A program made the translations under genes and the position numbers. Below, in pieces: positions 9,296-16,377 of a stretch of DNA of 16,526 bases; position 1 is the stretch's first letter, and each line of letters starts with the position of its first letter. The notes under the pieces are model-generated. The model was not told the origin of the DNA. It made no database searches and saw only the letters and a program-made list of their open reading frames with translations. Origin of the DNA: Octopus sinensis (taxonomy: Eukaryota); the NCBI RefSeq assembly GCF_006345805.1, contig NW_021825164.1, positions 1 to 16,526 on the forward strand, read 5' to 3'.

Positions 9296-9424
9296 AAACA
9301 CCATTATGGCTTCTTTTGCATATAGCTCCTGTTCGAAATGAAAAGGACCAAGTAGTTCTTCTTCTTTGCACCTTCAAAGACATAACAGCATTGAAGCAAC
9401 CATTGGATGATGAAGCCGGAAAAA
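9296..9424 (+). CDS. eag: Internal coding exon of an ether-a-go-go (EAG/Kv10, KCNH1/5-like) voltage-gated K+ channel; PAS domain C-terminal (PAC) segment
   Basis: A long polypyrimidine tract (ttgcctttcttttttttcttttttcttttcag) ends in AG at 9294-9295, and the donor GTAAAT begins at 9425. The exon is 129 nt, phase 1-1, and translates as (x)[42 protein letters not shown]. This matches the EAG subfamily as recalled (Drosophila [36 protein letters not shown]; human KCNH1 [36 protein letters not shown]) and not ERG or ELK. Length and phases also match my recollection of human KCNH1 exon 4. The ORF track missed it and shows only the antisense ORF 9255-9455. I found no flanking constitutive exons in the window. 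Confidence 0.96.
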
Positions 9425-9879
9425 GTAAATTTGTTAGAATTCTTTCCTTTACCATTCCTTGAAAACCATAATGAGTCTGTTAATGTAGTGTGATATAGAA
9501 TTTTTTTTAAAATTACTTTTCAGATAATTAATTTAGAACTACAGCACTTATATATGAGGTATTTGTAAGAAGGGTATTTCTAAGGTTTATAAAAAATTAT
9601 TGTGAGCTTTGCAAATCGCCATCTTTCCTATATTTGTCTCCTTTTAGTAAAAAGCAAACCCTACGTTAAATCTACTAATTCAATGTTAGTTAAATCATTC
9701 TCTTTTACCAAAATGTTTATTGAAATAATGCAGGAAACACCAAAACACGTCAATATTTTAAAACATTGTGTATGTATGAGTGTAGGGTGGCAGTCATTTC
9801 GGGCGTGATAAGTACATTATATATGTTCTTCTCCTTTGCACCCTCAAAAACATAACAGGTTTGAAGCAAACCACTGGAT

Positions 9880-9931
<52 letters not shown>

Positions 9932-10350: not shown

Positions 10351-10425
<75 letters not shown>

Positions 10426-10467
10426 TATATATATATATATATATGCATCTATATATACATAGATACC

Positions 10468-10511
<44 letters not shown>

Positions 10512-10513
10512 TA
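10303..10513. repeat. Compound (TA)n-(GA)n-(TA)n-(CA)n microsatellite between two fold-back elements
   Basis: Seen directly in the sequence. Confidence 0.95.
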
Positions 10514-10515
10514 TA

Positions 10516-11163
10516 CGAGAAGTCAACAATTATCTGCATTTCGTCATAACATTATTGCCACACTGCCTTCTGCGCATGCGTGTTTATGTTTGATACTATT
10601 GTGATCACGTGATCAATGTTTGAACCTGATTGCGCCATTTTTCTTTCTGGCTTTACAGTGTAAACATGGCCGCTCCACTAGCAATGTGCACCAAAGAAGA
10701 GTCAAAGAGCAGTGATCCGAGAGATGGTAATGGGGAACCGGTTCACCATCACCATGCCTCCAGCTTGCTGACTCTTCTCGTCAGCGGTGGAGGTTGACGG
10801 GCGTCCCGCTCCTTCTTCGTCCGTCACGCTTTTCAAACTTCTAGATCCACTCGTACACACTTCTATGCAGCAGCGCACTATCCCTGTATCATGCTAAAAG
10901 CCTCCGATGAAATTCAGCACGTGACACACCTTCCGACCAATTGAAATTGGATCGCTGCTCTCGTTCTTCTTTGATGCACATTGTTAGTGGAGCGGCCATG
11001 CTTTATACTGTAAAGCCAGAAAGAAAAATGGGGCGATCTGGCTCAGACTTCGATCACGTGACCACCATAATACCAACTAATAAGCACGCATGCGCAGAAA
11101 GCAGTGTAACAATGATAAAGATATGTTATGGTGAAAGTGCAGATAATTTTTGGCTTCCCATCG
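10516..11163. mobile_element. Non-autonomous mariner derivative made of two inverted copies of the element's 5' end
   Basis: The ends are mariner-like: TA|CGAGAAGTCAACAATTATC on the left and the reverse complement CGATGGGAAGCCAAAAATTATC on the right. The ~200-bp arms 10516-10718 and 10949-11163 are reverse complements. The minus strand from the ATG at 10999 encodes a degenerate mariner transposase N-terminus: MAAPLTMCIKEE..WSEGVSRAEFHRRLLA*YRDSALLHRSVYEWI*KF..SVTDEEGAGRPSTSTADEK..MVMVNR. The plus strand from the ATG at 10666 gives MAAPLAMCTKEE/QRAVIR. Confidence 0.9.
10740..10999 (-). pseudogene. Mariner transposase N-terminal (HTH DNA-binding) fragment with stops and frameshifts
   Basis: It contains the motifs WSEGV, RSVYEW and EEGAGRPSTS typical of mariner-family HTH regions, with two in-frame stops and frameshifts. 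There is no DD34D catalytic region. Confidence 0.85.
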
Positions 11164-11397
11164 GATACGTACATACATATACTTATATATGTACACATGT
11201 GTGTGTGTGTGTGTTTGCGTGAGTATATGTGGCTGTCTATGTATATACATATGTATATATATGTATAGTTTTCAAATGATTGTGATGCGAAAACTTAATA
11301 ATACTCTTTTTCATCACGGTCAGCAATTGATTGAAAAGATAATTTCTAATATTTTTATTACCTGCTCCATGTTTTATGGCTTTTTTCTCATTTGCAG

Positions 11398-11409
11398 CTC
11401 CTCATCGAG
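11398..11409 (+). CDS. eag: Candidate 12-nt alternative microexon of the eag gene (CTCCTCATCGAG)
   Basis: The acceptor ttttttctcatttgcag (AG 11396-11397) is followed 12 nt later by the donor GAG|GTATAT (GT 11410-11411). The length is a multiple of 3 and the phase-1 frame has no stop: A|CT CCT CAT CGA G| = T-P-H-R plus the first base of the next codon. No transcript evidence is available. Confidence 0.5.
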
Positions 11410-11711
11410 GTATATGTTCCTTTATTACTTTCGTCTGTATTAATTTTTTATGCTGAATGCGCGTTGCTTTTAATGCACTTCGCAAATATGTCAAAAAGTG
11501 AAAATATATTAGATTGGTGCAAAACTGCAGTTTTGAGATTCTTCGGGAGGTAATTATTACAGATATTCTATAGTTAGGATTATTAGGAACGATACAATAT
11601 TTTCGGAAGCATGAAAATCATATGGAATATATGTATACAGCTGGAGGAATTTAAATTCATTATGGAAACGTAAACTAAATATGGGAACATTGGAATGTTG
11701 GAATGTAATGC

Positions 11712-14049: not shown

Positions 14050-14483
14050 AGAAAAAGTTGGAGAGCGCCCTTATATAAAGACTGACAGAGTAATAGAAGC
14101 TAGAAACCCTGATTTAGTAGTGGGAGACAAATAGAATAGAAAGAACCAGATAATTGACTTTACAGTCCCAAATGATGAAAACATTAATGTGAGAAGTATA
14201 GAAAAAATAGTAAAGTACCAGGACCTAGCCATTGAATTACAAAGATTATGGAAAGTGGCGGTAAAATGTATCCCAGTAGTTATAGGTGCATTGAGAACTA
14301 TCCCTAAAGATCTGAACAGATGGATAGAAGGAATACAACTCAGTTTAGTACAGCTGCAGAAAACAGTGTTGTTAAGGACAGCTAGGATACTTAGGAGGGT
14401 TCTTGGCATTTAAGGTTATTTGTTGTAGCCCTATATTAGGACTTTTTCTTTTCCAACAGTTTAATCTGTTGTCTGTATATGAA

Positions 14484-14542: not shown

Positions 14543-15355
14543 GGTAAATACTGGACTAAACTAAATGCAAAAGAAATAGACAAAGAAAAATCCCAGCAAT
14601 GGTTGAGAAGCTCAGGACTCAAAGCAGAGACCAAAGCCTCCCCACCAGAAATTACCAAAAACATGTAATGAAAAGAAATATAACAAATAACTGCAGAATA
14701 TGTGGAGATGGACAAGAAACAATAAATCAATTATCTCTGGCTGCCCAGTCCTGGCTAAGAAGGAATATATTCACAGACATGACAGAGTTGGAACCTACAT
14801 ACACATGGAAGCTATGCCAACATTATGGATAACAACAGAAAAAAGATGGTATAGGCACACACCAGAAAAGGTCACAGAAAACGAGAAAGCAACTATACTC
14901 TGGGATATGCCGATACACACAGATAGAGAAATTAAGGCCAACAGACCAGATATAGTTGTCAGAGATCATGAAGAAAAAATGCTTTCTAATTGATGTATCA
15001 ATACCGGCAGATGACAACGTGTCTCTAAAGAAATGGAGAAACTTTCAAAATACAAAGACCTGGAAATAGAAGTAACCAGATTGTGGAATCTAAAAACAGA
15101 AACAATCCCTATCATAGTAGGTGCATTAGGCATGATAAAAATATTCAGACAAATACATAACAAAAACACCAGGACTTACAAACACATATAACATAAGAAA
15201 ATTGCACTACTAGGCACTGCACACATCCTATGCAGAACACTTTCCATACAATAACCATCAGAGCATCACAACAAATCACAGCACATACCCAGGCACACAG
15301 AGCTGCGCTCGGTAGTGAAGTGAAAGCACGCTATAAAAATAAAACTACTGAATAC

Positions 15356-16083: not shown

Positions 16084-16377
16084 GTATCTGTTAAAATTTG
16101 AAATAGTGACAAATTGGAGTATGAAAACTGTATTGGTTGTGCGTGTAATAGTTGGTGCATTGGGAACTGCAAGTAAAGATTTAGACAAATGGTTGAAGCA
16201 GATTGGAATGGTATTCTACAGAAAGTTTGCCTCTTGGTGACAGGAAAGATTATCAGAGGGGTTTTAAGTTCTTGAAAGATTATGAAAATCTTGTGGATCC
16301 TTATGGTTAGAGGTACTAACCAGCTATCCACATTTGTTCAACCAGGAATAAGAACGAACCTGAGTCAATAATAATAA
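16084..16377 (+). mobile_element. Short 3' fragment of an R4/Dong-clade LINE (copy 3, different subfamily)
   Basis: It translates LKFEIVTNWSMKTVLVVRVIVGALGTASKDLDKWLKQIGM/ILQKVCLLVTGKIIRGVLSS* (stop 16273-16275), followed by a short 3' UTR and an aataataataa tail at 16367-16377. Confidence 0.8.

Follow-up and report, generated by a model that had tools for sequence, protein, structure and literature searches.

A 12-nt microexon-like sequence in a long intron of an octopus EAG potassium channel gene: a probable splice-site look-alike

Background

The described systems closest to the sequence reported here are the neural microexons of the Srrm234 / SRRM3-SRRM4 type. In Drosophila, eMIC-dependent exons have long AG-free stretches, a UGC near the 3' splice site, long UCUC-rich tracts and strong CUAAY branch sites, and they combine weak 5' splice sites of their own with strong upstream 5' sites (PMC8797185). 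Mammalian microexons show the same 3' layout, but their 5' sites are strong (10.1101/2024.09.17.613571). A second point of comparison is the EAG1 (KCNH1) channel, whose calmodulin site BD-N is placed at residues 151-165 in PMC2877719. Our literature search returned no paper tying KCNH/eag to a microexon.

The work described here concerns a stretch of 16,526 nucleotides of Octopus sinensis DNA (contig NW_021825164.1), hereafter called the window, to which all coordinates refer unless another sequence is named. A sequence-only reading of this DNA had proposed a neural microexon of 12 nt, inserted just after the PAS domain of an EAG channel. We consider the 12-mer to be most probably an unused splice-site look-alike, or pseudo-microexon, in a long and repeat-rich EAG intron, and give this reading a probability of about 0.6.

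Methods

Splice sites were scored with a rough matrix, which is neither MaxEnt nor species-specific. The scores were used to rank frame-preserving, stop-free AG..GT pairs of 3-27 nt, and dinucleotide shuffles of the 7-kb segment were scored likewise.

A composite filter was modelled on the published eMIC-exon code, with thresholds that were set after the candidate had been seen. On the acceptor side, the 40 nt upstream had to be free of AG, the pyrimidine content had to be 75% or more, and a TGC had to lie within 15 nt. A CTAAY was required at a distance of 15-70 nt on the upstream side, the exon had to be 3-27 nt long, in frame and without a stop, and its 5' site had to score 0 or higher. Since the thresholds were post hoc, the rarity of the composite was taken as perhaps 5-10 times less extreme than its raw value.

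The prior for a real microexon in the visible intron was set at 1-2%; this assumes that the gene encodes a neuronal channel and that the intron is one of roughly twelve, and it includes some credit for the variable linker described below. The likelihood ratio allowed for the composite, after the post hoc discount, was about 10-50.

Results and discussion

The host gene and its PAS exon

One coding exon was found in the window (Table 1). It is flanked by ttttcag/ and /gtaaat (here and below a slash marks an exon border) and consists of 2 nt, 42 codons and 1 nt (A). Among solved structures, its translation matches residues 105-144 of KCNH1 (E 5e-14), in an alignment to EAG1 residues up to 146, and residues 103-143 of KCNH5 (E 2.4e-13). 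The Pfam PAS_9 model reaches 24 bits, under its cut-off of 27, and this exon was the sole match in Rfam and Pfam scans of the window. By homology the host gene is thus identified as an EAG (Kv10, KCNH1/5-like) channel gene. The exon is homologous to EAG1/EAG2 and its intron lies at the conserved phase-1 position, which must be old, since in relatives with reading frames that continue into the intron the similarity breaks off at an identical place. The intron is absent, and the exon fused, in one contig (L015, 495-755) and in many arthropod-like sequences (among P0164-P0183).

The host intron is longer than 7.1 kb, and the candidate lies 1973 nt into it. A neighbouring EAG exon, previous or next, was sought inside the 16.5-kb window and is absent from it; the exons for voltage sensor, pore and CNBHD thus fall beyond its ends. 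That more than 7.1 kb of intron is visible while the next exon lies outside the window supports a look-alike on the base rate.

Two further observations were made beside the PAS exon. A 55-nt intronic copy of its 3' half (9358-9412) lies at 9825-9880 on the forward strand, with 48/55 identical positions and one 1-nt indel. It begins about 400 nt past the exon, is frame-shifted, has no acceptor and passes directly into (CA)n(TA)n microsatellite sequence; it resembles a degenerate, incomplete duplicate of the exon. Readthrough of the PAS exon 5' site on the same strand (9425-9462) gives GK-SKFVRILSFTIP-stop, which resembles the way in which the true next exon begins in relatives, with G-LSKFARLARSVTR. 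The S-K in this readthrough is nearly forced by the splice consensus, and the F-V-R-I that follows would be either a coincidence without explanation or a remnant.

Table 1. Features of the PAS exon and of the candidate microexon in the window
Feature	Coordinates	Strand	Basis or remarks
Coding exon, C-terminal end of EAG (KCNH1/5-like) PAS domain	9296-9424	+	Structure matches, Pfam PAS_9
Candidate 3' splice region	11339-11397	+	AG-free stretch, pyrimidine tract and TGC
CTAAT	11346-11350	+	Match to CUAAY branch-point consensus, 47 nt 5' of candidate AG; motif class as in PMC8797185
TTTGCAG	11391-11397	+	TGC (11393-11395) directly abuts AG (11396-11397)
Candidate 12-nt microexon CTCCTCATCGAG	11398-11409	+	AG..GT pair ranking, shuffles, composite filter
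Candidate 5' splice site GAG/GTATAT	11410-11415	+	GT at 11410-11411; consensus mismatches at +4 and +5
Cluster of four TGC/YGCY motifs	11451-11476	+	40-65 nt 3' of candidate 5' site

Layout of the candidate

The core of the candidate, TTTGCAG/CTCCTCATCGAG/GTATAT, occupies 11391-11415 and reads, with its surroundings, ...ttctaatatttttattacctgctccatgttttatggcttttttctcatttgcag/CTCCTCATCGAG/gtatatgttcc... on the forward strand. The 12-mer preserves the frame, has no in-frame stop, is bordered by a canonical AG and GT, and falls within the 3-27 nt of microexons. The preceding AG is found at 11337, which leaves an AG-free stretch of 59 nt before the acceptor, and the T/C-rich tract ATGGCTTTTTTCTCATTTGC (11376-11395) contains 15 pyrimidines in 20 positions. 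Six TGC lie around the candidate, at 11363, 11393, 11451, 11458, 11465 and 11474; UGCAUG is absent from the downstream cluster.

Read together with the A that ends the PAS exon, the 12-mer gives A/CT CCT CAT CGA G, i.e. T-P-H-R and a leftover G. Inclusion would thus create the junction GCCGGAAAAA/CTCCTCATCGAG, a read across which would contain GCCGGAAAAACTCCTCATCGAG, and a protein ...DDEAGK-TPHR-G. The sequence-only reading described this layout accurately: the branch-like CTAAT, the tract, TTTGCAG, the 12-mer and GTATAT all lie where it had placed them, UGC/YGCY motifs do occur on both sides, and its claim that the candidate is in phase with the 1-1 PAS exon, giving DDEAGK-TPHR-, is confirmed by the composition of that exon. 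Its assignment of T-P-H-R to the CDK/Cdk5 consensus also agrees with our result, as the hypothetical peptide matches [ST]-P-x-[KR], an established proline-directed kinase consensus. We regard gene identity, exon, phase and motif layout as shown.

Other uses of the same acceptor were rejected. A zero-length recursive splice site does not fit, the bases after the AG being CT and not GT; a longer exon would meet TGA in frame at 11452-11454; and the GT at 11416, as alternative donor for a longer exon, scores -8.9.

Comparison with known microexons and with decoys

Like the Srrm234 / SRRM3-SRRM4 microexons (PMC8797185; 10.1101/2024.09.17.613571), the candidate is 12 nt long and frame-preserving, with a UGC abutting the AG (UGCAG) and a CUAAY motif. 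Its long AG-free stretch and a pyrimidine tract with a CUC element belong to the same likeness, so that every 3'-side feature of the eMIC code, as PMC8797185 gives it, is present. The candidate also resembles these exons in its location, in a neuronal ion-channel gene and at a predicted surface linker beside an interaction site. Its own 5' site, GAG/GTATAT, appears weak, as in fly eMIC exons and unlike in mammalian microexons. Together, the 3' layout and the weak 5' site would fit the invertebrate eMIC-exon code, which speaks against a look-alike.

On these grounds the 12-mer may be a genuine, alternatively spliced neural microexon of Srrm234/eMIC type, a reading that we regard as possible but doubtful. 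A splicing factor would then bind the UGC abutting the AG and assist the recognition of so small an exon in neurons. The layout is complete, down to the apparently weak 5' site. However, the upstream 5' site, AAA/GTAAAT of the PAS exon, is weak by the rough matrix and not strong as in flies. Measured against the microexon signature, the apparent weakness of both 5' sites supports the look-alike. As in intronic pseudo-exons, the candidate lies deep in a long AT-rich intron and its splice sites are ordinary to weak; unlike them, it outscores every other pair in about 190 kb and brings several microexon-specific motifs together.

Chance expectation

Among the 124 AG..GT pairs of 3-27 nt in the downstream intron that keep the frame and contain no stop, the candidate has the highest summed score by the rough matrix, 7.3 versus 1.1 for the runner-up. 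It also leads over both strands of the entire window, the second pair there reaching 4.9 by the same matrix. Such wide leads count against a look-alike. Among dinucleotide shuffles of the 7-kb segment, 7% attain the summed score and 1.2% attain both scores. By this matrix, which is not species-specific, the candidate 5' site GAG/GTATAT scores 0.30, compared to -1.18 for that of the true exon (AAA/GTAAAT).

Gaps between AGs are as long as 59 nt in 6.3% of cases, for 24% of AGs a TGC can be found no more than 25 nt away, TGCAG is found at 2.1% of AGs, and six TGC per 141 nt are attained by 2.5% of windows of equal size. The full composite filter was passed by the candidate alone in 33 kb of window strands and 159 kb of other eukaryotic loci, and by 2/3000 shuffles. 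This rarity is in favour of a neural microexon and against a look-alike, with the post hoc discount given in Methods. When the two motif terms were left out, real DNA yielded 2 further matches in about 190 kb. This core pattern, made up of a long AG-free stretch, a pyrimidine tract, an in-frame AG..GT pair and a passable 5' site, thus occurs about once per 90 kb, so that several decoys of this sort would be expected in a gene whose introns are long.

Repeats around the candidate

The candidate lies in a unique island of 240 nt (11268-11507) between repeats. Upstream, an inverted repeat (10421-10718 / 10949-11266) has arms of about 300 nt that are 74-80% identical and enclose some 230 nt of loop; its GC content, 47%, is relatively high, (AT)n and (TG)n microsatellites lie at its borders, and it may be a foldback or MITE-like insertion. 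It ends 130 nt before the candidate. The downstream repeat is 100 nt away: the sequence TTAGATTGGTGCAAAA / TTAGATTGGTGCAAAACTG at 11509-11527, which we take to resemble a terminal inverted repeat of mariner/MADE1 type. No partner for it was found in the window. A nearly identical stretch of 17 nt ends one cephalopod-like contig (L001, 1460-1476), as expected for an assembly break at a repeat.

Repeats so close on both sides set the candidate apart from Srrm234 / SRRM3-SRRM4 microexons. They argue mildly against strong constraint on the flanks, and with repeats only 100-130 nt off on either side the case for a neural microexon is weakened. Constrained microexons do not usually sit in a 240-nt island between repeats, which again supports the look-alike.

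The same surroundings raise the alternative that the pattern has another origin, as part of a transposon remnant or of some opposite-strand feature. Besides the repeats that flank the island, retrotransposon-like reading frames are present in the window. They are found on the forward strand at 14189-14413, 14599-14993 and 16118-16198 (...VVIGALRTIPKDLNRWIEGI...LLRTARILRRVL; ...ILWDMPIHTDREIKANRPDIVV...) and resemble the C-terminal end of ORF2 proteins from non-LTR retrotransposons of invertebrates; a Pfam search did not match them. The segment 11268-11507 itself is single-copy, with no second occurrence in the window or in any fetched locus, it has no Rfam match, and no homologue was found for the reading frames across it. 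We consider this alternative very improbable, and the least likely of the rival readings weighed here.

The junction in relatives

Across relatives, the PAS exon junction is followed by a Gly, found before [LM][SG][KR]F... in 38/38 sequences that span it. In two compact invertebrate contigs (L004 and L005) the next exon begins (G)LSKFARLARSVTRNRS. The number of residues between LKQP[IL] and this invariant Gly varies, from K-G through KV-G, KA-G, KT-G and KG-G to the longer forms KGGDLLA-G, NTAVSNKV-G and KDVGVA-G. The linker between PAS and BD-N is thus a hot spot of length change across animals, and an insert of four residues directly before the Gly would be of a kind already accepted there. 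In other animals 1-8 extra residues are taken up, always before the Gly, which favours a neural microexon and counts against a look-alike. Two sequences apparently of the same gene, P0177 and P0185, differ by a segment of 17 residues at the junction.

The last base of the PAS exon is A in the window (9424) and G in every relative with a readable exon end, including two cephalopod-like species (L001 and L009). In those relatives the G is the first base of the invariant Gly codon. If the candidate were simply skipped, the codon would therefore become AGN, for Ser or Arg, and the Gly would be lost, unless the next exon has its start one codon earlier; inclusion would let the candidate's last G restore the Gly codon. 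We take this as mild support for the exon and as a point against the look-alike; it is mild because G is the usual last exon base and K-x-G forms are common.

The exon might, in consequence, be genuine and present in most or all transcripts of this lineage, its G completing the Gly codon after a G-to-A change at the end of the PAS exon. The Gly in 38/38 relatives and the final G of their PAS exons are what this constitutive use would explain. Against it, the next exon may begin one codon earlier (K-x-G-LSKF), as in the relatives with KV-G, KA-G or KT-G; the fit costs little, G being the consensus last base of any exon; and 12 nt with such weak splice sites would be an unusual constitutive exon. 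We judge constitutive use to be improbable.

A difference of 12 nt at exactly this junction was found in amphioxus. The KCNH5-like protein KAI8480449.1 (Branchiostoma belcheri) has four extra residues, AAPA, at the same phase-1 position and, like the octopus candidate, directly before the Gly. The genomic sequence (L017, 19690-19712; GCA_025402995.1) contains tandem acceptors 12 nt apart, ttccag/ccgcccccgcag/GAATGAGC, of which the annotation takes the upstream one. The amphioxus case was therefore rejected as a microexon: it consists of two AGs at the start of the next exon, not of a separate exon, and is known from gene prediction only. That a 12-nt difference arises there by tandem acceptors is in line with the look-alike.

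The junction maps to EAG1 residues 146/147, and the BD-N site (residues 151-165 in PMC2877719) starts four to five residues further on. This agrees with the sequence-only reading, which had placed the N-terminal calmodulin site just past the junction, and it is a further point for a neural microexon. T-P-H-R would then follow the PAS domain and precede the Gly with which the BD-N segment, (G)LSKFARL, begins, making the linker four residues longer. At the BD-N position invertebrate relatives have LSKFARLARSVTR; calmodulin regulation of the mollusc channel is assumed here. The insert may also create a proline-directed kinase site. The match of T-P-H-R to [ST]-P-x-[KR] speaks for this, although it is a match of four residues noticed after the fact.

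Searches for transcripts and for related DNA

No octopus-like transcript was found when the exon peptide was searched against 5.8 billion proteins and 1.84 billion cluster representatives; the matches were confined to single-exon reading frames and, from other phyla, a small number of predictions. A junction query of TPHR and the expected next exon found no protein with TPHR. Neither isoform of this species is in the database searched, so that this absence is uninformative. None of the relatives collected has TPHR at the junction of the PAS exon, which goes with the look-alike. In a search for orthologous DNA, concatenated reading frames across the candidate gave 186 word matches, none of them significant. 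Metagenome contigs were scanned at the DNA level for exact copies of the candidate and of the end of the exon, with no match, and exact protein look-ups of four reading frames of the window and of P0019 gave no record.

The cephalopod-like contigs (L001-L003 and L009-L014) represent two species that share 90% identity. Their alignment to the window is confined to the exon (77% nucleotide identity), short repeat matches aside. The candidate has no match in L001 and L009, which cover at most 1.5 kb of the intron, compared to the 1973 nt at which the candidate lies.

Weighing the readings

With the prior of 1-2% and the likelihood ratio of about 10-50, the posterior for a real microexon comes to about 0.15-0.45. 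The prior for a microexon in any single 7 kb of intron, about 1%, weighs against the neural reading. That the 12-mer is a real microexon of any kind we regard as a possibility well short of even odds.

The look-alike, which we prefer, would work as follows. A T-rich tract ending in TGCAG would happen to sit 12 nt before a GT; the spliceosome would pass over it, or splice there at noise level only; and the PAS exon would be joined directly to an exon beyond the window that encodes (G)LSKFARL.... That the candidate splice site is not used is what we infer from the base rate, the splice sites and the repeat setting.

Conclusions

The most far-reaching proposal would be a lineage-specific neuronal microexon in which phosphorylation of the Thr, or the longer linker as such, alters the inhibition of EAG by Ca2+/calmodulin. 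This builds one supposition upon another and we hold it to be quite improbable, because the exon would have to be real, the Thr phosphorylated and the channel responsive. If it were true, a cephalopod K+ channel would couple kinase to calcium signalling under the control of splicing. Should the exon alone be real, a gene of cephalopod excitability would contain a microexon specific to this lineage, placed at the linker that clamps the PAS domain to calmodulin, and this would provide both a concrete case of splicing that tunes the Ca2+ regulation of a K+ channel and an example of an exon missed by standard annotation. In either case, the locus would represent a new instance of a known mechanism, neural microexon or intronic pseudo-exon, and no new mechanism. 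If the 12-mer is a look-alike, as we consider probable, a full eMIC-like set of motifs can arise in long, repeat-rich introns such as that of this octopus EAG gene, which bears on the prediction of microexons from sequence only.
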